32,000 bases of DNA, from the NCBI GenBank assembly GCA_054661495.1, contig BAAFSQ010000068.1:12455-44454 (forward strand), written 5' to 3'. The translations under genes were made by a program, and so were the position numbers. The notes beneath the pieces were generated by a model that was not told where the DNA came from, made no database searches, and worked only from the letters and a program-made list of their open reading frames with translations. Below are positions 2,795 through 14,108 of the stretch, piece by piece. How positions within the stretch are numbered: position 1 is the first letter of the stretch; each line of letters opens with the position of its first letter. This stretch comes from Zygophlyctis sp. KS116 (taxonomy: Eukaryota; Fungi; Chytridiomycota).

Positions 2795-2826
2795 AAGTTT
2801 ATTTTCTCAAGTTTGAATAACATAAT

Positions 2827-4680
2827 TCAACTGTTACTAAGTCTAATTTTTATTTCCTGTCCAGTTTGAGAAACTTGTAGAATATCCTTTGTTGCTAAAA
2901 CTAAAACTTATTCTTTTAGTTTTAGAAATCTTACCATGATAAAAGGCTTGAGCAGCGACAGTTTTTGTAGAATCAGGAAGTAAATCATCCAAGAAGATCT
3001 GATTGCAATCAGTGTCTTGAAATATTTCTTTCAGATAATTGTAAAAGGAAAATGTTTCTTTTTCAAGAGCAGATTGGTCAGACACTTCTGTTATCGGATC
3101 AACATCTTTTATATTAGAAATCTGGAAATTACCAAAGAAATCCTGATCTTCTGTATATTCTTTTTCTGGAGAGCCTTCACGACTAATGTCAACTATCTCA
3201 AATTTCTTACCTGCGTTTGAACTTTACTTCATCCAAAGAAAAGGAATCAACTGATTGTTGAGAAGATAGTTTAGATACTTTGGAAACTGTTTTTAGAAGA
3301 AATGAATTTACCAGTGGATCCTGCATGAGAATGCCAAGGAAGTCTAGATGGCGTGTCAAGACTTGCGCTATAATCACTGATTGCATTTCTAAAAAGTTCT
3401 GGCTCCATACTGATATCCTTTTTACTATCATCAGGGGGTTGCGGAACATCGTAATCGGCAATATCTCTAAACACTTCTGGCCCCTCATCATAATTGATTT
3501 CAGCTTTGCGCTTTTTAGTTGCTGATTTATCTAAAGACTTTTTTGGAACAATTAAATCAAGAGGTATCCAAGTCTCTTTCAAATATGAACCAAGCCCTAC
3601 GTTTTAGTCCGAAAATAATTTACAAATTGGAGGCTCTTGCACCTGTTCCAAACACCATTCCCAAGAAATTATTTCAATTCTTTGATGACTAAAGCCTTTA
3701 ACTGTACCGCGCTGAAGCTCTGCAATTTCATCATTAGACAATGAAATTTCAGAATCAAATTGCAGCGCTTTTCTTTTTTGTCCTCTTTCTCTCTTTTTTG
3801 GTAATGGCTCAGACTTTTTACTTAAAAGATCCTCTTGTTCCAAATTTACACTTGCTTGATCCGATTTATGCGATCCAGTGATTGCACTGAAAGGATCCTC
3901 AAACAAATCATTCATCTGTATTATTAGTACTTTAAAATATTCTTACTATAAACGACGGACCTTCTAGGCCTGAATCTTCTGTTTTGCTAGTATCTCCAGT
4001 TATAGACTGAAATGAAAAAACATCAAACGGATCATTACCATTAGAATCATCCAGTAATATATCCTGCCCATCATCCAACTTAATCATTTCCTCCATTGGA
4101 GATTGTGGAAGAGTTATCGATTTGTTTGTTCGCGATACAGACTTCTTCACAGTTGGGGGTGCAGTTGGTAATGATGATTCACTACTTTGAGGAATCAACA
4201 TTGGCAATTTCAGCTAAAATTATATTAGAATGCATTACCTTTGTTACATCTAAAACTAATTCCAGAGGCAGTTCAATCCCTTCTTTGAGAGTAATTTGAT
4301 CTTGTCTGACCGTTTGTAGAGGCATTTCAAGATTATCAGATTGATAATGATAATAAGTATTTTTAACTCTTAGATAAACTGAATTAACATTTGCTATATA
4401 TAATTAGTAGTTTTAATATACTCAAGAAATACGTCGTTTGCGCCTCAAAGACTCTAGTCGTTCCCATCATTAAATTGCTCACTAGTCTCAAAGCCAATGG
4501 ATTGGGAGGATCAGCCAAAAACTCACTGCTATAAACTCAAATTTAAATAATACCAAGTCTTTGGAATGTTTATGGAAGAGATCTGCTTCTTATTCAACTT
4601 TCGACGTGGAAGAGTAGCTGCAAGCCTATCATTAGTCAATGCAAGTACCAAATCACTGCTAAAGATGAATCTTGAAACAT
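2827..4680 (-). CDS. REC8: Kleisin cohesin subunit, Rec8-type (meiotic), multi-exon
   Basis: Spliced N-terminus MFQDSSLAVIWLAATLPRRKLNKKQISSINIPKTCSEFLADPPNPLALRLVSNLMMGTTRVF. C-terminal winged helix VAAQAFYHVLVLATKDILQVSQ. The WLAAT and LRLxSNL motifs favour Rec8 over Rad21 (WLAAH). Introns include 4626-4648 (23 nt) and 2907-2934 (28 nt). Confidence 0.8.
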
Positions 4681-4692
4681 TTAATAAAGGTT

Positions 4693-5709
4693 TTAATTAG
4701 GCAATTTTGAGATTGGAAGCGGCATCACTAGACCTACCGCAAGTTCATTTCTTATTTCATATAACAACTTGTATGCATTCTTTAGTGTTGTTTCAGTACA
4801 TCCAGCGATTCCAGCAATCTCTTTTGCACTTTTTGGTTCTATAGATAAACATGATACAAAATAAAGACATGCAGCAACTAGAGTAATTGGAGATTTTCCT
4901 GCCAAAATTCCATTTTCTGTTACTGACCGTGATAAATGCAAAGTTCCCTTGATCACATCTTGTTTTAAATCTAAAGCGCTAGAGAATCTTATAACGCATG
5001 CATCTAATTCAGAGTCTGTATTTTCAACACGAGTAACAAAGATTGGTTGTAACAACTTGTAACATTTTCCAATATCTTTTTTACTAACCTTGAATAAGCA
5101 AAGAAAAGAAATACTTTTGTTAACGAACAAATTTCTTTAAAAGTTCTTGCGACCCGATGCTCTTTACAAGCAATATAGATGCATGCAGCAATAATACTTT
5201 CTACGCCTTTGCCCTTTAATAATTTTTCTTCATCAACCTGTTTGATTAATGGTATATTTTAACCTTTTTAAAGAATTGTTTGGCGCTATCCTTTACAATC
5301 CTAGATAGCCCTATTCCATCACTCATTATATCAATTTGTTTAAATGCATTCAATAGATTCTTTTGAGCTTTTCCGACAACTTTAACTTGAGTTTTGGATA
5401 AATTCAAACTAGCACCAGAGCCCCCATCCATTTTCCCAATGATTGTTGAATCCAACTCACCTTCTAAAAGTGGGTCAGTGGATGCACCAACTCTGGAAGA
5501 GTCTTTAGCTCCGTCATCATTGGAAGCAAAATTCCTCCATTCTATAAATGATTAAAAATCTCTCAAATACCAGAACGAGTGTCAATTACTCTATTTCCCA
5601 ATATTAAACCACAGGTGCCACAAATCAAATCCCCAGCTGTAAAGTCTTCCACAATGTTTGGGACAGGATCCTGACAGTCCCTGCACATTAGCCGAAGATT
5701 TAAATTCAT
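4693..5709 (-). CDS. SUA7: Transcription initiation factor TFIIB
   Basis: Zn ribbon CRDC...CGTC, B-reader SEWRNFASNDDGAKDSSRVG, and two cyclin repeats (AACIYIAC; GKSPITLVAACLY). Three introns of 26-29 nt. Confidence 0.95.
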
Positions 5710-5743
5710 TCTTGACAAATGATCTTAAATTCTTGGGGTTTCG

Positions 5744-8700
5744 CTAGGAGTGCGAGTGAATTATAAGGCTAGGCTCTTTTGCAATTTCTTTTGGTCCATG
5801 TCGGCATCGGCATTCTCTTTTGGAATTTTTTAGATTTTCCTTCAAGTAATCAGATGCCATTCTGCATGCTCCTCTCTTTGCATCCTTTCGTGTTTCTGCA
5901 GTACAAGTCCCAATAATTCTTGAATGAAAAGAAATGTTGCATTCAAAAATATTAAGTACTAAATCAACTTCAAATCTAAAATTAAGTTTTGAATAAATTA
6001 CCTTATTTTAGTCATGGTGCATTGAAAGTCCTTGTTAATAATTGTAAGAAAGTCTGAAATAGGATTCTTGTCCAAATTACCACAATTCAAGGATCTAGAG
6101 AGTTCAAATCTTGACCACCAACGATTTATAAGTGTTTTTTCAATGACATTATATACAGCTTGGATATTGAATCCTGAGTCTAAATATATCGCTCCAAGTA
6201 AAGCTTCATAAATATCTCCAGCAGCTTTAGGTGCACAAGTTAAATCATCCCAAAAAAATGGTTTAAGACCGTGAATGTCGGTATTATGTTTTGGACTTGG
6301 TAAAGCTTCTAGAATCTCTATACCGTCGCTTAAAGGATGTTTTAGACTTTGATTTGGATTTAGAATTTCAATAGATTCATCGAAAATACAATCTTCTGAA
6401 CCATTATACTCTTCTTTAATAAGAGCTTCATTCACACATGATTCAAGAGTTTGATCATCAATTCCATCCAGGTCAATGACATCTCCTTCAAGGACTAAAC
6501 TAATGTCAGAATTAGGGAGTTCAATAGCTTTGCTAAACTTGTTATCCGCGGTTTGATCTATCATAACCGCATCAAGTTGGATATCTTCAATTGGTTTAAT
6601 TGCGGTAGTTTCATCTCTTAAAGTAGTATCTTCGAGGAGATTTGGCGCATCGATATTCATTTCTCCATTTGGGAATTCATCAAGGATCGAGTCATCATCA
6701 GAATCTTCATCAATTACAATAATTTCATCAGCAGTGGCCTTTGGAACGGTCTCTCTTAAGCTTTCTTTCTCCACCATTTCAGTCTCAACTATTTCCTGAC
6801 CAGACATTTCTTCATCTTGATTTTGAGATTGTTCTACGTCATTTTCGCTTTCTATAGGCTGATTCTGGCGCTCTAGTGCTTGGGCGACAATAGCAGAGCT
6901 TCTAAAATTCTTTTCGCCGACACTGGTCTTTATTCTTTTTCTCGGTACCCAGCCAAGATCATTCTTTAAAATATCCAGCTTTTTCTCTAATTCAGCAGAG
7001 AATAGCATTAATGATTTAGCCAAAGGAACGCTCATATGATCTAGTTGTTTATGCAGGTCTAAAGAACATGCAACTGTCGCCAAAAATTGATTATTTACAA
7101 GAGCAGAACGATATTCAGTGAGTAAACGAGGAGTCATATCTGGATATTTCTTGTATAGCCAATGCATGATAATATAACCTAAAATTGCATCACCTGAAAA
7201 TAAATATACTATATCAAATTACCTAAATACTCCAAGCGCTGATAACAGAATCCAACACCGTCCACATTCGGGCCCAAAGAGCTAGGATGTGTCACAGCCT
7301 CTACTGCGTAGCGATAGTCATTAAATTTGTAATCAAACTGTTCCTCGATTTTTTGGATAGTTCTTTTCATTCGATTGATATATACACGACTCTGCTGAGA
7401 TTCAGATTTTCTAAAATGTTTCTTCCATACGGGTAAGTAGTCACCCAAATCAAATTTAAATTCTTCTCCTAGAAAACGATGAACGGCTGTAGCTCCTCCC
7501 CTTTCTCTTGAATCAACTATGCATGCGCCAATCACCGCTTCAACGCAATCAGCTACACATTTATCAGGCAAATATTGTGTTCTTTTACGTGAGTTAAGCG
7601 GAGGAAACCAATCAGATCGCTTCATTTTATGAAAAAGAATGGCTCCCTGTAAGTCTTGCAAAGTTCCCATTGTATGTAAATGCGTATTTCTTTCAACCGA
7701 ATGCCTCGCAACTGTTAACCAGCCTTTAATTTAACTTGACAAAACATACCTTCATGACGATTTGGATGAAGAACAAAATAATGCAAAGCCAGATGCATCT
7801 TAAGAAAACTGTCCCCAAGAGTTTCAAGCCGTTCGTAATCATATGATATTTCAACGCAAGGGCCAGTAAGGGCGGGTCTTAAGGTTTCCAGCGTGACCGG
7901 CAGTTCCTTCTTAAAATTGGTTCCTGATTCAGACTGAATACTTCTAGGTATCCAGCCTTTTTTAACTTCTAAAACTAGCAAATTGTGGTGCAGATGATAC
8001 AACATAAGCGGGAGCCTAGGAGCTTCATATCGCATAATCGACGCTGGGACGGGATGAATCGAACAAAATTGAGGAATTACAAATGTATCTGGCCGATCAT
8101 GATAAATTGCTGGTACAGTGAGAAATGGAAGAATAACTGGAGCCACGGAAAAGATTGGTTGGTTCTTGATAATATCACCCTTATATTGTAAGCGATATTT
8201 GTAGTAGTCTGCGGGAGTCTTGTGCTTCCCTAGAGAATTAATCGGAATATCTTCTGAAAAAGGATTATACTGATTTAAAAGATCAGTTACGAAGTATCTT
8301 CGTTTGTAATGAATATGATCATACAATACCAATTCTGCGAAGTCCCGCCTTTTAAAGTCTTCAGAATTGCAAAGTTCGTTCATAGGGTTCTTTGGCTCCT
8401 TTCTCATCAATTCCAAGAGCTCCATGTCTAGCATTAGATCAGCGTCCTTTTCACCATTTTTATAGGTTATTGGGGCTATCAATAGTGTGAATTTGTCATC
8501 AATATTAAAATTACTTCGTAGGATTGATGAAAAGATATTATAATGAAATTCTTTTATCAGATCAAATTTTTCTGCAGTGACTTGGATTTTACCAGCTATA
8601 GGCCGAACGTAGGCCGAAACTTCTTCCCCTTCCATTAGAAAGCTGAAGCTGATAGGTGGGATAGGATGATCTGAAGGTGTCAAAAGTCCAACTCTGAAGT

Positions 8701-10900
8701 CCTTTTTAGGAATACCATTTTCTTCCAAGCTTATAACATGAAACGTCGCATTAACAACGTCAGTTTCCCAAGCGGTACCAAACAGGGTAGGGTTTCTATA
8801 TGTACATTCATGAACTTCAATTGTTTTCGGCGTTTTTGTTGTATTTTGCATTATGACTAAACGATCAGGTCGATTGGGACGTAATCTATCGTCTAGTTCA
8901 CCAACGAAGAAAAGGCGTTGAATCGCTTCAAAACTAACCCATTGCCGTGCTTGCTTCTTTGTTTTTGATGGCTTTCCTGTTACTTTGCGGCACTCTTCCG
9001 GAGTATTTAGAGGCATAATGAGAGTAGAAACGTATTTTCGGGTAGTACACCCTTCTGAGTCGTTTTCTTCTGTCTCTTTCACCTCCAATTCCATAAACTC
9101 TGGTTTTGAAACAGCATATCCATCGTTTGGCAATGTATTGCAATAATTGTGGAGAAGAGAGAGTGCTGAATATATGCTTATACACGACCCTGTACTTTCA
9201 ACCATAAATATCTCGTCTTGCTTCATCGGTATGCTATTCAAATCCAAATCTTTGTCCGTCTTTTCCTTTTCATTATATAAAATATTTTTCATATTATTTT
9301 CTTCTAGTTGCATGCCTAAATTCAATCAAAAAATCATACATGCTAATAGTGAGGCCTCCTCCGGGTTGGACTTCTTTGAAAGAACAACAAAAACAGAGTT
9401 TTTATGTCTTGCTCTTCCACGTGATTGTATATATGCTGCAAGATTTACAAACATATCAAATCTTATTACCAATATGCAAGATTGAATATCTAAACCTTCT
9501 TCTGCCACTTGCGTCGCAAATAAAAGATTTATTTGCCCGTTTCTAAACTTTGTCATTATATCATCTTGACCTTGTATTGACATATTAAGTGTGGAACTAT
9601 CAGAAGATCCATGACCTACAATCACTCCTGGCCGGATCCAATCCAGCTTCTTCGAGTATTTTACAACCATTGCAAGAACACATGCAGTCCATCGCTGTCT
9701 ACAAAACACAATCCCACAAAACTTATTTCGAGTAGGCCTAAATGTTTCTAGAACTTTTAACAATGCAGAAACTTTTGGAGATATGTTTTCAATTGAAGGC
9801 GGTGGTGTATTATCACCCAAAGACGTACAGTTCCTTATATATTCATCGAGTTTTTCAACAATCTTTTCCATTTCTTCAAAGTTTTGATTTTCATCTTTTT
9901 GACGACTCTGAAATCTAGAATACTTGAGCTTTGTTGCTGCATCATGAATTGAGAGTTCCAACATCCTTTCTGCAGGCCATGGGCCCAGTTCATCATTTAT
10001 ACTAATTGCTTGCGTCATTGCCCTATTTAATTGAGGAATACATCCTCCCTGTAGATCCAACATTTTAAGATATAAATTAGGATATTCATTCCTTGGAGCC
10101 TCTTCATAGTATTGTATATATTCTGTTGGTCTAGCTACAAAATCAGACACCTTGCATGTATGTGCTTTTGCCAGCAAATTACTTTCTAGTATTCTAATTT
10201 TTGTTATTTAAAATTTAAAAACCTTATTGAATCTTCTGTATTTTCCTTTGAAATTAGAGGAGATGCTGTCATCCCAAATATTTTTGGTTTGTCTGATGAA
10301 TGCAGATAATGCTGAGACATGATCAACTTATAAGCGTGATTTCCTCTAGCATAATGAGCTTCATCAAAAACAATCAAGTTCAGCATACTCATCTTGACAA
10401 AAGACCTATCCAGCATATGTTTAAAAATATCTGGAGTAAGCACAATCACATCCGCTTCCTTGAGTTCGTTATTCCATCTTTCATCATCCCACTAAAACAT
10501 TTAAATTAATAAAAAGTACATAATCTAGACACATTGCACCATAATAATGCTTTACTCGTAAATTTAAATTAAGTCGCAGATATTTAGATTGCTGCGATAC
10601 CAGTGGCACTTTTGGAACCAACTACATATAAATAATTTCAAATCATACAAAAACAGATAATCTTGACTGCTTATTTGAAAAGTCGATATTATGCACATGT
10701 TTGATGATCAGACATGATATGAGAGTTTTACCGGATCCTGTGTCTAATACTGCGATTACATTCCCTGCCATTGCTTTTTGGAACATTTCCATCTGATAAG
10801 CCCGTGGGACCGTTGCTCCGGATTCTTCATGCTCATCGATCGTCAGTAATGATGAATCAAGTGTCTGGAATTCTCTAATGCCAAAGGAATGTGAGCTCAT
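5744..10900 (-). CDS. Dicer-like protein (helicase, DUF283, probable PAZ, RNase IIIa, RNase IIIb, dsRBD)
   Basis: Helicase motifs PRAYQ, DTGSGKT, DEAH, GMTAS, EEGLD and QSRGRAR. DUF283-like SALSLLHNYCNTLPND. RNase IIIa YERLETLGDSFLK...ADCVEAVIG. RNase IIIb YQRLEYLGDAIL...GDIYEALLGAIYLDSG. The last exon encodes a dsRBD with terminal ECRC, stop TAG 5744-5746. Introns include 9316-9339 (24 nt). Confidence 0.95.
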
Positions 10901-10970
10901 GAAAAGTGAATTGCGGTTTAGGGGACTGTTCTTTCAAGAGTGCACTAGTAAATCAATTTGTCTAAATTAT

Positions 10971-13900
10971 TCAAGGAGAAATTCTACGAGGCTTAAACCA
11001 TGCCAAGAAGAGAGAGCTTGTAATTACAGACACAGAGCTAAGAGCCATTAATAATCCTGCAATCCAAGGTTTTAATTCTAAATGTGGAATAAATCCTGCT
11101 GCAATCGGTATGGCCAATAAATTGTATGAAAATGCCCATGCAAAATTATATCTAATCTTTAAAAAGGTTGCTAAAGAAAGATCCAAAAGAATCTTTACAT
11201 CTTGTAAATCTGATTTCATGAGAACAATGTCTGCAGCTTCAATAGCAACATCTAGTCTTTAATATTAATGGGATACCTGATCCAGCGCCTATAGCTATTC
11301 CTAAATTAGACCGAGCAAGTGCTATAGAATCATTGATTCCATCACCTACCATACCAACATTACATCCTACAAAACGCTCTTGAAGCCATTGGATTTTTTC
11401 AGATTTTTGTTCTGGGAGTACATGAGAAAAGATATTTGTTGATGGGATTCCAACCGCTTTTCCAACGGAATTAGCCGTTAAGCTATTGTCACCAGTGATC
11501 ATCCATACGTCAATATTTTTGGATTTCAAGTATGAAATTACATTGAAGGCCTCTGGTCTGATTTGATCAGCTAATCCAAAGATTGCAAGAATGCGCGACT
11601 CTCCTAATCGAGATCGAGAGCCTACTAATACGACTGATTCTCCTTGATTCTGAAATCCTTCCAAAGTTAAAATTAATGCTTTTTGGGCGATTTCTGTTAA
11701 AGATAGTAATCCATTTTCCACCATCCAGGCTTCGCTGCCGGTAAATATAGTCATTCCATCCCACTCTGGAACTGTAACTTGAAATCCTTTCCCAGCAACT
11801 TCTTTTGAGTCTTCCAATTTCCAATTTTTCGTATCACTTGAATTCAAGCATTTGAAAGAAGAAAAAGAAGCAACTGCCGCAGCTAAAGGGTGGTCACTCA
11901 TTGCTTCAATAGCACACAAGAGCGACCAAAAATCATTTTCCACTATTTGGGAGCCTTGCAAGAGTAGGCGATGTTCAACGATAGCCGGCTTTCCAATTGT
12001 CAGAGTCCCTGTTTTGTCAAAAACTATTGTTTTTAATCTATGAGCTGATTCCAGAGCTGTTCCACCACCCTTGGCAAGTATCCCATTTCGAGCCGCCACT
12101 CCTGTCCCAACCATGATTGCAGTAGGTGTAGCTAGTCCTAGTGAGCAAGGACATGCGATTACTAGAACAGAAACACAAAAATTCAATGCTATTTGGTATG
12201 AATATCTACCGCTAGGAACACGATCTGGATTTAAAGAAAAGTATACCATCCAAAATGTAAATGTTAAAATCGCAATAATTATAACTAGCGGGACAAAATA
12301 CGACGAAATTTTATCTAATATTTAATGATTTAAAAATACCTGCCATAGCTTGTATAGGAGGTTTAGAGCTTTGGGCATTTTGGACAAGTTTAATAATTCG
12401 AGATATAGTAGTATCAGAGCCTGTTTTACTGACCTTGATCAATATTTGAGATGTCAAATTTACGGTTCCAGCCATAACCTCTGATCCTAGCGTCTTTGAT
12501 ACAGGTACTGTTTCTCCGGTGAGCATACTTTCATCAATAAAAGTCGCTCCTTTGAAAATGAACCCATCACAAGGTATCCTCCCACCAGGATTTATTTTAA
12601 GGATATCACCCATTTGTACCAAAGAGACTTGAATGATTTTTTCATTTACTGGATCAGATTCATTAAATTCAATCAAACACGCCTCATCTGGAGTTAACTG
12701 AAGAAGCTTTGTAATTGCTTGAGAAGTTTGACCTAAAAATAAATATCAAATAATAACCTTTTGCATAAGACTCCAAGAATTTCCCCAAAATGACAAAAAA
12801 TATTAAAAACACACAAGTTTCAAAATATTGCTCTAGAATCGATTCACCTTGATAAATATTCACCATTAAAGAAAAAACAGAATATGTGTAAGTGATCCCA
12901 GTACCTAAAGCAACTAATACATCCATCTAAAATAAGAAAACTTTGAAATTTCATACATTTGCAGTCTTTGCATACACCAGAGATCTGTAAGCACCATTGA
13001 AGAAATGCCAACCAAGACCAAACTGAACAGGAGTTGCCAACAAAAACAATACAAGATCAGAAATAGTCAATCCAGGAACAATAGTTTCCATAAACCAAAT
13101 TCTTAAAGAATTTTCATCAGGAAGAACCATCATGATAATCATTGATACAAAAAAAGTAGGCAAAACAAATACCAAGGACCATATAATACGATTATACAAT
13201 GACTGAAACTCTTTTTGATCAATATTTTGCGCAGAAAGATCCAAATTATTTTCATCCCAAATAGAAACAGAATATCCCAAATCTTCAATTATATCCTTTA
13301 TATCCCGAAGTCCTATCAATTGTGGATTATAAACCACTTTTGCCTCGTGTGTCATTAGACTGACACTTGAATCCAGAATCCCTGGTCTACCCTTTAATCC
13401 ATTTTCAACAGCAGAAACACAGGATGCACAACTTAATCCTTGTATTAACAGTTTTATAATCTTTTGATTAGACTGATCTATAGTCGCTAGAGAAATACTT
13501 TCAATCCCTCCTATTGTATACCCCATATCTTGAATACTTTTTGCAACATCTTGAGCAGAAAGAACTATTGAATCATGAATTAAAACTGCTTTTGGAGGTA
13601 TAAGAGATACTGAAACTGAATCTTTGACCACTCCTATAATATTCTTTAGAGAATTATCTATTCCTGAAACACAAGACGCACAACTCATTCCAGAAATCAG
13701 AATCTGCGTTTTAACCAAGTTTGCTACATTTATCCTATGATCAGCCTGATCTTTGTAAAGAGGTAAAGAGTCAATTGTATTTATAACAGCCTGATACCCC
13801 CTTTCAGCAAGAATTGAAATTACGGCCTTTTCTGAAAATGGAGCAGAGAATAATAGATTTAAAGTATTTTCTTTTCCAGTTTCCACAATAACATTCTTGA

Positions 13901-14108
13901 GAGTCTTGATTCTAGATGTTAATAGACTTGATACAAGTTCCACCGATCTCTTATTTCCATCCAAAAGAGAGAGAGTCATCAAGTGAAAAGACTTGATGGG
14001 CTTCAATGTCCGACAATTGCAAGTAATGCATTTACAGGTTTCGCAAGAACAACAAGATTCCTGAATAATAATTGGAATATTTGTATCAGGGCAGTTGCAT
14101 TCATTCAT
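10971..14108 (-). CDS. P1B-1 copper-transporting ATPase (Ccc2/ATP7-like)
   Basis: GMSCASC and GLSCASC metal-binding domains, TGE, CPCSLG, DKTGTLT, HP, TGDN, GDGIND, and the YN and MALSS transmembrane motifs. Short introns join the five ORFs. Confidence 0.95.

Follow-up and report, generated by a model that had tools for sequence, protein, structure and literature searches.

Known Dicers and SUMO-interacting motifs

In human Dicer, the loop that connects the two catalytic halves of RNase IIIb is acidic, as in the Dicer described here, and we know of no conserved Ile/Val-acidic modules or basic patch within it; similarly, to our knowledge, S. pombe Dcr1 has no comparable RNase IIIb insert. RNF4 and Slx5 are tandem-SIM proteins, in which the SUMO-interacting motif (SIM) is repeated in several copies in a row, and a classical monopartite nuclear localisation signal (NLS) is an exposed, conserved basic cluster with the consensus K-(K/R)-x-(K/R). 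SIMs have been defined by a core of [V/I/L]-[V/I/L]-x-[V/I/L], or its inverse, located in a disordered region and flanked by acidic and/or phosphorylatable Ser/Thr residues, as exemplified by the VVVI core and adjacent CKII serines of PML (PMC9371903). Dcr1, a nuclear Dicer, owes its retention to a CHCC zinc dsRBD (PMC3199388). Dicer, TRBP and Argonaute have all been identified as SUMO substrates (PMC4482082, PMC4673853, PMC4103873); SUMO ligases have also been placed downstream of piRNAs (PMC8490990). The original remark, that no described SIM-bearing Dicer was known, agrees with the papers listed that mention both Dicer and SIMs, none of which describes such a protein, and the main text of a 2025 survey of 1418 fungal species is silent on insertions, loops, disorder and SUMO.

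A Dicer gene in Zygophlyctis sp. KS116

The window, a 32,000-nucleotide stretch of a Zygophlyctis sp. KS116 contig, contains a Dicer gene at 5744..10900 on the minus strand, delimited by open reading frames, Pfam matches and translated start and stop codons, and interrupted throughout by tiny introns. Read along the minus strand, it encodes a helicase, Helicase_C, Dicer_dimer, RNase IIIa, RNase IIIb and a dsRBD-like C-terminal exon. Exon 1 has a GSGKT motif and, upstream of RNase IIIb, Pfam matches were obtained to Helicase_C (5e-16), Dicer_dimer (8e-19) and RNase IIIa, with the Dicer and SUMO genes searched exon by exon and the exons unjoined. Ribonuclease_3 matches to both the IIIa and IIIb pieces place two RNase III domains in one chain which, together with the helicase, Helicase_C and Dicer_dimer (DUF283) regions, is the organization of a class 3 RNase III. 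The 536-aa exon that separates Dicer_dimer from RNase IIIa gave no Pfam match to PAZ at E <= 0.01. The catalytic acidic residues can be read directly from the sequence, in ERLETLGD and DCVEA for RNase IIIa, and as all four residues, the E and D of RLEYLGD and the D and E of GDIYE, for RNase IIIb. A 29-nt GT..AG intron (7194..7222, minus strand) falls inside the RNase IIIb signature, YQRLEYLG/DAIL, and joining across it restores the GDA(I/V)L that is continuous in other Dicers. As the RNase IIIb catalytic residues are intact, the enzyme, judged from its sequence, should still dice.

Among named Dicers, the closest all come from Chytridiomycota, consistent with the fungal Dicer originally proposed from the sequence, whose domains the Pfam matches confirm. 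The best full-length matches among 1.84 billion representatives are from Borealophlyctis (KAJ3287150.1), Rhizophlyctis (KAJ3038714.1), Terramyces (KAJ3274422.1) and Quaeritorhiza (KAJ3087920.1). The relatives that also carry the insertion described below are all metagenome-derived, and a scan of metagenome contigs added no species to those already found. Contigs of relatives also have the gene order Cu-ATPase, Dicer, TFIIB. A second Dicer-like gene in the genome (C585) has a short loop, and the insertion is therefore confined to the main Dicer. The organisms that carry the insertion are uncultured, so that experimental tests will need recombinant or heterologous systems.

An acidic insertion between the RNase IIIb catalytic halves

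The RNase IIIb exon (6002..7193, minus strand) is an open frame with a Ribonuclease_3 match at each end. Between the signature side, which includes NNQFLA (7078-7095, minus strand), and the second catalytic half, PKAAGDIYE (6205-6231, minus strand), lies an insertion of 241 aa, NDLGW..FFWDDL (6241..6963, minus strand), supported by alignment, open frame, AF2 and dN/dS, in which D plus E constitute 25% of the residues and the net charge is -42. The domain, the catalytic residues and the position of the loop, between the NNxxFA helix and PKAxGD, are all as in human Dicer (2eb1, 5zak). In the alignment to 2eb1 the catalytic halves are 262 residues apart versus 38 in the human enzyme, an insertion of ~225 aa beyond human Dicer at the same place. 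The gap is typically 30-75 residues, with a median of ~43, in ~130 other Dicers among the 150 top-ranked representatives in an exhaustive HMMER search, and 10 residues in bacterial RNase III. Both the ~230-aa acidic insertion that had been predicted to split RNase IIIb, with its motifs at the coordinates given below, and the assertion that this loop is normally short are thus borne out. The insertion is retained in all nine known members of the clade, at lengths from 150 to 266 aa.

Other Dicer-like proteins of Chytridiomycota have both the LFWxxL-APKAAGD core and the tail with H-x37-CxC in common with the Zygophlyctis Dicer, and their loops are mostly of 38-70 aa. Expanded acidic loops of 111-181 aa do occur in other chytrid Dicers, including those of Quaeritorhiza (139), Rhizophlyctis (114) and Phlyctochytrium (111), and so, from these alignments, loop expansion by itself is not unique to the Zygophlyctis clade. 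The loops of these three genera are, however, without the five islands, A to E, described below, although there is one VLVDLD in Quaeritorhiza. Gene capture was considered as a source of the insertion and rejected, as the insertion lacks a paralogue in the genome, matches nothing in Pfam and gave no useful lead in the protein atlas.

The insertion is almost certainly exonic

The frame of the insertion has no stop codon, versus 17 expected (P about 1e-8), with 8-37 stops in each of the other five frames. The same frame is open in six species, with the probability of no stop about 1e-8 in five and 2e-4 in the sixth, and the other frames across these species have 1-38 stops each. Every indel in the insertion between relatives is a multiple of three, and dN/dS over the insertion is 0.19-0.36 for core-clade pairs, although synonymous sites are saturated between species. 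The introns read in the Dicer gene are only 26-29 nt, and a sequence scan detected no tiny-intron, donor or acceptor candidates within the insertion. Because the frame is open, indels occur in threes, dN/dS is below 1 and introns are this short, the insertion is almost certainly exonic as far as genomic sequence can establish, in agreement with the uninterrupted coding stretch first proposed. That it might instead be missing from the mature protein, as an unusually long intron or through alternative splicing, draws on there being no RNA read across it, and is most improbable given these features; the long-intron reading was rejected on the basis of the open frames and dN/dS. The sole RNA-library evidence is a 164-nt contig, 100% identical to 6045..6208 (plus strand), from a single run of one estuary metatranscriptome (X1), that covers part of the RNase IIIb exon downstream of the insertion.

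Conserved islands in a disordered loop

In an AF2 model based on 41 sequences, pLDDT is >90 in the RNase III core and <50 over most of residues 121-300, consistent with the disorder initially suspected, and the insertion is predicted to be disordered except for two helices. Within the core clade, five short islands are conserved (dN/dS about 0.03-0.3) and the linkers between them drift with dN/dS about 1, most linker segments having values of 0.8-1.4.

In Island A (6862..6945, minus strand), a basic patch, PRKRIK (6928-6945), precedes a predicted helix, GEKNFRSSAIVAQALERQNQ, at residues 92-111 with a block-mean pLDDT of 63-76; the patch aligns as PRK[RK][ILR]K in six relatives, and dN/dS is 0.15-0.39 where measurable. 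Island B, designated SIM1 (ADEIIVIDEDSDDDSILDEF; 6673..6732, minus strand), has an IIVI core, an acidic tail and two S-x-x-D/E serines. Its central IIVIDEDSDDD (6691-6723) has the clade form E-I-I-V-I-D-E-D-S-D-D-D-S, both serines of the DEDSDDDS tail are conserved among relatives, dN/dS is 0.03 in two saturated pairs, and it is in the low-confidence, disordered part of the AF2 model. Island C, SIM2 (6556..6573, minus strand), is DAVMID here and D(I/V)IILD in the aligned relatives; the AVMI of Zygophlyctis falls short of the four-residue SIM consensus, to which the IIIL and VIIL of the relatives conform. Island D, SIM3 (6412..6486, minus strand), is GDVIDLDGIDD followed by a predicted helix, QTLESCVNEALIKE, at residues 247-263 (pLDDT about 73-75). 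VIDLDGIDD lies at 6454-6480, with the clade form G-x-I-I-D-L-D-G-I-D-D, and dN/dS is 0.10-0.12 in two pairs and 0.37-0.49 in four others. Island E (SLKHPLSDGIEIL..NTDIHGLKPFFWDDL; 6241..6348, minus strand) includes DGIEIL (6310-6327; clade form S-D-G-I-E-I-L), is 61-86% identical between saturated core-clade pairs, and at its end rejoins the RNase III fold, with pLDDT >84 from about residue 301. Of the two IEIL motifs originally noted, it is this second one that is conserved in the core clade. The first, in ESIEIL (6361..6378, minus strand), is not conserved, being replaced in aligned relatives by DKAEVG, ELAEVQ and EETEEA. Near SIM1, SIM2 and the first IEIL, block-mean pLDDT is 35-49; at the second IEIL it is 49-51, and SIM3 adjoins a predicted helix of pLDDT about 74. 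The expectation that SIM and NLS islands would be conserved within a divergent loop holds, by alignment and dN/dS, for the core clade. In P0007, P0040 and P0079, which are more distant but also carry the insertion, strict SIM-like motifs are lost or degenerate, with 0-1 in each.

Taken at sequence level, the insertion is a translated and lineage-specific enlargement of the acidic surface loop linking the RNase IIIb catalytic halves, and belongs to the main Dicer of a clade of uncultured aquatic chytrids. The loop is a disordered acidic tether, with near-neutral linkers between five short modules under purifying selection, and we are highly confident that it is coding, disordered and equipped with conserved linear motifs. 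Growth of a permissive surface loop that is tolerated and has essentially no function, with the islands kept only for folding or solubility of the adjoining core, would account for the linker dN/dS of about 1, the variation in length across the clade and the absence of strict motifs from distant members, but it is improbable, as SIM1 and SIM3 are far from the core and yet have dN/dS of 0.03-0.12, at saturated synonymous distance, and every known member retains the insertion. The loop might also act intramolecularly, as a nucleic-acid mimic or autoinhibitor that masks the active site of RNase IIIb, or basic surfaces that bind RNA, and tunes substrate choice or product release, anchored by the basic patch and helices. 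Its location between the RNase IIIb catalytic residues, its net charge, the acidity that this loop shows in many Dicers, from human, several animals and other chytrids, and the independent acidic or polar expansions in other chytrids are consistent with such a role, but a pure charge mimic would have no need of positionally conserved Ile/Val cores, and the linkers hold much of the charge and evolve almost neutrally, and we therefore consider this unlikely.

A possible docking platform for SUMO

Overall, the explanation that we prefer, with a probability of about 0.4, is that this tether functions as a docking platform with SIMs and a nuclear import signal. The three or four hydrophobic-acidic modules (IIVIDEDSDDDS, D-IIIL-D, IIDLDGIDD and DGIEIL) would most likely be SIMs that add a beta-strand to SUMO, CK2-type phosphorylation of the serines adjacent to SIM1 might strengthen the contact, and Dicer would thereby be tethered to SUMOylated, possibly poly-SUMOylated, partners. 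The basic PRK(R/K)xK patch could most simply be a classical nuclear import signal; KRIK in PRKRIK, and KKIK, KRLK and KKRK in relatives, conform to the monopartite pattern.

IIVI (SIM1), VIDL (SIM3) and IEIL (twice) conform to the SIM consensus, AF2 places SIM1, SIM2 and the IEIL motifs in disordered regions, and acidic flanks are present as DEDSDDDS after SIM1 and as D/E beside SIM2 and SIM3. This arrangement, a hydrophobic core in a disordered region with Asp/Glu and CK2-type serine flanks, resembles that in PML and Daxx (PMC9371903), and the insertion shares with tandem-SIM proteins the presence of several copies in succession. PML, Daxx and RNF4/Slx5 are, however, SUMO-pathway or nuclear-body proteins for which binding has been measured, whereas those in Zygophlyctis are putative motifs within the nuclease domain of a Dicer. 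The genome also encodes SUMO (C41, the gene being split by a small intron of about 25-28 nt), two SP-RING (zf-MIZ) proteins and two Piwi/Argonaute loci; a search of this fragmentary genome gave no match to the RdRP family, and nor did the control.

The number of SIM-like motifs is not above that expected from composition, with P = 0.13-0.8 for shuffles of the insertion, 0.05-0.2 for core-clade relatives and 0.12 combined, and the consensus is degenerate, such that conserved hydrophobic-acidic motifs can bind many partners. The structure-prediction check proposed at the outset, undertaken with SIM1 alone as a 38-mer and with Thamnocephalis SUMO (P0033) as a proxy that is 58% and 47% identical to the organism's two SUMO exons, gave ipSAE values of 0.37, 0.37 and 0.36 versus 0.02 for the best control, a separation that falls only in the 'weak support' band. 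Agreement between runs is at least 81% of contacts, with partner pLDDT of at least 70. Of 78 solved complexes, 51 reached the mark used, as did 2 of 108 mismatched pairs, but scores of 0.60 or below came from only 5 of these solved complexes and from every one of the 4 mismatches that passed. The SIM1-SUMO score may reflect memory of solved SIM-SUMO complexes. The prediction is not counted as evidence of SUMO binding, and the SUMO reading stands as a plausible hypothesis.

The islands might instead dock a partner other than SUMO, such as an Argonaute, a cofactor that binds dsRNA, a kinase or some other region of Dicer itself, with the two predicted helices and adjacent hydrophobic strands constituting the binding element. 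In Islands A and D a helix (pLDDT 63-76) lies beside a hydrophobic motif, which is more than a bare SIM needs, and the chance-level counts of SIM-like motifs and the weak complex score also speak for this reading. Four modules with one hydrophobic-core plus acidic/serine pattern are, however, typical of tandem SIMs (PMC9371903), the Pfam, atlas and paralogue searches suggested no alternative partner, leaving such docking a somewhat doubtful alternative. Inspection by eye revealed no LIR/AIM-type motifs. Leaving SUMO aside, the locus offers a clear instance of the evolution of conserved linear motifs within a catalytic-domain loop.

Returning to the preferred docking platform, our expectation that at least one motif of the insertion would bind SUMO in vitro is tentative, and SUMO binding as the physiological role of the insertion is doubtful. 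The fullest version, a phospho-regulated tandem-SIM loop with an import signal through which Dicer would read poly-SUMO directly and be brought to SUMOylated nuclear targets or activated there, is rather unlikely, and recruitment specifically to heterochromatin or meiotic axes is highly unlikely at best. If correct, the poly-SUMO version would connect SUMO signalling to small-RNA biogenesis by direct physical contact, a connection described for no Dicer in the literature searched, and a loop that binds SUMO would provide a compact natural example of a dicing enzyme targeted by a modification reader in its own nuclease domain. Early-diverging, uncultured fungi evidently have Dicer variants that are absent from current surveys.

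The C-terminal tail

The last exon (5744..5975, minus strand), which follows a 26-nt intron (5976-6001), encodes a dsRBD-like tail with an H-x37-C-x-C spacing identical to that of the S. pombe Dcr1 C-terminal tail (PMC3199388). The spacing to the first ligand differs, being 22 in Zygophlyctis versus 36 in the Dcr1-type CHCC (PMC3199388). The likeness to Dcr1 is one of ligand spacing alone, there being no sequence-level match to the tail in PDB or Pfam. The H-x37-CxC arrangement, together with an invariant upstream Cys, is present across the clade and in many chytrid Dicers.

A long acidic loop within RNase IIIb

The Dicer gene (10900-5744, minus strand) lies in AT-rich, eukaryotic DNA (~35% GC) and is recognizable by a GSGKT helicase motif in its first exon and by Pfam matches to Helicase_C, Dicer_dimer and Ribonuclease_3 pieces from both RNase IIIa and RNase IIIb. 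It is interrupted by very small GT..AG introns, including one of 29 nt (7194-7222, minus strand) that divides the RNase IIIb signature between YQRLEYLG and DAIL, and another, 26 nt long (5976-6001, minus strand), directly before the last exon. The SUMO gene also has a tiny intron, ~25-28 nt (about 1609-1636 of locus L015). Both genes were searched exon by exon.

The RNase IIIb exon (6002-7193, minus strand) contains, at 6241-6963, a 241-aa insert that is 25% Asp plus Glu with a net charge of -42. The original prediction of a Dicer with RNase IIIb split by a long acidic insertion was correct, and the motifs that it listed all lie at the positions it stated. RNase IIIb has all four of its catalytic acidic residues, and RNase IIIa has its own as well, so that the insert splits an apparently active RNase IIIb domain. 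Exon residues 1-58 and 321-351 align with residues 50-107 and 146-176 of the human Dicer RNase IIIb structure (2eb1), leaving 262 residues between the two halves versus 38 in human Dicer.

A family profile was searched against 1.84 billion representative proteins, and the RNase IIIb gap was measured with two small HMMs in the best 150 matches. Among these, most Dicers have gaps of 30-75 residues (median ~43), whereas the gap is 150-266 residues in the insert-bearing clade; in bacterial RNase III it is 10. Further expansions of 181, 151, 139, 114 and 111 residues occur in other Dicers in this set. The loop is thus short in most cases and a site of recurrent expansion. The 139-aa acidic loop of Quaeritorhiza haematococci (P0044, KAJ3087920.1, residues ~2150-2270) has expanded independently and holds one motif, VLVDLD, resembling a SUMO-interacting motif (SIM); loops of 111-181 aa occupy the equivalent site in other chytrid Dicers (P0058, P0069 and the fragments P0040 and P0074).

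Translation of the insert

The sole RNA match, a 164-nt contig from one estuary metatranscriptome, is 100% identical to 6045-6208, a part of the RNase IIIb exon that the insert does not reach. That the insert is exonic is borne out by its evolution. Its frame has no stop codon in the window or in the five relatives with DNA, where 8-18 stops would be expected (P = 1e-8 to 2e-4 per species); the other frames have 1-38 stops each. All length differences in the alignment preserve the frame and, with synonymous sites saturated between species (dS >= 1), dN/dS in core-clade pairs is 0.19-0.36 for the insert versus 0.03-0.06 for the catalytic parts. Inside the insert there is no donor/acceptor pair of the kind that bounds the tiny introns nearby, and it is very improbable that the insert is an intron. 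Sequence comparison thus provides strong evolutionary evidence that the insert is translated.

Conserved islands and resemblance to SUMO-interacting motifs

AlphaFold2, run with a 41-sequence alignment, gave pLDDT values >90 in the RNase III core and <50 over most of residues 121-300, with two helices predicted in the insert (92-111 and 247-263; block-mean pLDDT 63-76). Alignment of the core clade (the window protein, P0001, with its relatives P0002, P0003, P0004, P0005 and P0006) revealed five conserved islands. Island A is GW-PRK(R/K)xK followed by the helix VGEKNF-SS-VAQ-LER; B (SIM1) is E-(I/V)-I-(V/M)-I-(D/E)-D-D-S-(D/E)-D-D-S-I-(L/I/F)-D-E; C is D-(I/V)-I-I-L-D; D is G-x-(I/V)-I-D-(L/V)-D-G-I-D-D followed by the helix LE-CVNEAL; and E is SLKHPLSD-(G/E/D)-(I/V)-E-I-(L/I), leading into NTD-HGLKPFFWDDL, which rejoins the RNase III fold. 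The dN/dS falls to 0.03 in B and 0.10-0.12 in D in the best pairs; in most linker segments between islands it is 0.8-1.4. The expectation of conserved motifs within a divergent loop holds for islands A to E in the core clade, but not for the first IEIL (ESIEIL), which is not conserved, nor for P0007, P0079 and P0040, more distant proteins with the insert, which still have a basic patch and a loop that is acidic and rich in Ile/Val but no more than 0-1 strict SIM motifs. This chytrid Dicer clade has a real, translated, disordered loop expansion that carries conserved linear motifs. Searches with the insert itself gave neither a Pfam match nor a useful protein-atlas lead, and found no paralogue of it in the genome.

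SIMs have a [V/I/L]-[V/I/L]-x-[V/I/L] core in a disordered region with acidic or phosphorylatable-serine flanks, as exemplified by PML (VVVI plus CKII serines) and Daxx (PMC9371903). Islands B and D have such a core, as do the two IEILs; island C has it in the relatives but not in the window copy. The flanks are acidic and both serines after SIM1 are in an S-x-x-D/E context, the CK2 consensus. By sequence, the motifs of the insert are SIM-like and NLS-like; the SIM-like patterns are, however, no more numerous than composition predicts (P = 0.13-0.8 in the window, 0.05-0.2 in each relative, 0.12 combined).

As the organism's SUMO gene is split by an intron, a Thamnocephalis SUMO (P0033; identity 58% to one exon and 47% to the other) served as proxy in complex predictions with a SIM1 38-mer. 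These gave ipSAE values of 0.37, 0.37 and 0.36 versus 0.02 for the best control, with at least 81% of contacts in agreement between runs and partner pLDDT >= 70, a result graded as weak support. In the calibration, which covered no peptides or disordered chains, 51 of the 78 solved complexes reached the pass mark, as did 2 of 108 mismatched pairs; values <= 0.60 were given by just 5 of the 78 but by all 4 mismatches that passed. Since many SIM-SUMO complexes have already been solved, the SIM1 pass may show only likeness to these. That the insert binds SUMO is a reasonable hypothesis, but no more than that: binding in vitro is possible, at somewhat less than even odds, and a physiological role for it is rather unlikely.

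Human Dicer is a SUMO substrate whose phosphorylation drives nuclear entry (PMC4482082, PMC5386496), and TRBP and Argonaute are also SUMOylated. Among papers that mention both Dicer and SIMs, no title joins the terms, and none of the matches listed describes a SIM in a Dicer; insertions, loops, disorder and SUMO all go unmentioned in the main text of a 2025 survey that covered the Dicers of 1418 fungal species (19 chytrids).

Candidate nuclear features

Six relatives share the conserved basic patch of island A, which matches K-(K/R)-x-(K/R). The last exon (5744-5975, minus strand), with no PDB or Pfam match, encodes H-x37-C-x-C and an invariant upstream Cys. Nuclear retention of S. pombe Dcr1 depends on a C-x36-H-x37-C-x-C zinc site within its extended dsRBD (PMC3199388); the H-x37-C-x-C spacing is identical in the window Dicer, whereas the first spacing is 22 rather than 36. 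The H-x37-C-x-C spacing, with the invariant Cys, recurs at loci L016, L017, L018 and L019 and in the Dicer relatives P0008, P0037, P0044, P0058, P0071, P0084 and P0087; it is general to chytrid Dicers and not linked to the insert. The CHCC-like tail is a sequence-based lead to a nuclear Dicer; the proposed roles in heterochromatin and at meiotic axes have no support here.

Lineage and genome content

All named proteins among the best full-length matches are from Chytridiomycota (Borealophlyctis, Rhizophlyctis, Blyttiomyces, Terramyces, Quaeritorhiza, Gaertneriomyces, Geranomyces and Phlyctochytrium), and all proteins sharing the insert are metagenome-derived; we read the insert-bearing Dicers as a clade of uncultured aquatic chytrids. 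No RdRP (PF05183) match was found, which is uninformative in so fragmentary an assembly (12.7 Mb, 1175 contigs). The genome encodes SUMO, two SP-RING (zf-MIZ) SUMO-ligase candidates (C87 and C52), two Piwi/Argonaute loci (C95 and C10) and a second Dicer-like gene (C585, L001; minus strand). The open frame of this second gene extends over at least 855 aa and encodes two RNase III domains, the RNase IIIb loop being very short; no helicase is visible in the part of the gene covered by the contig, which is just 2.6 kb. With very short spacers between its genes, the chytrid genome is compact. The order Cu-ATPase, Dicer, TFIIB on one strand (2800-14100) is kept in relatives (L016, L017) at saturated synonymous distance. 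In L016, a small ORF adjoining a Ser/Thr-rich protein has a weak match to CBM_10 (fungal dockerin-like) at 10027-10242, corresponding to about 1855-2124 of the window.
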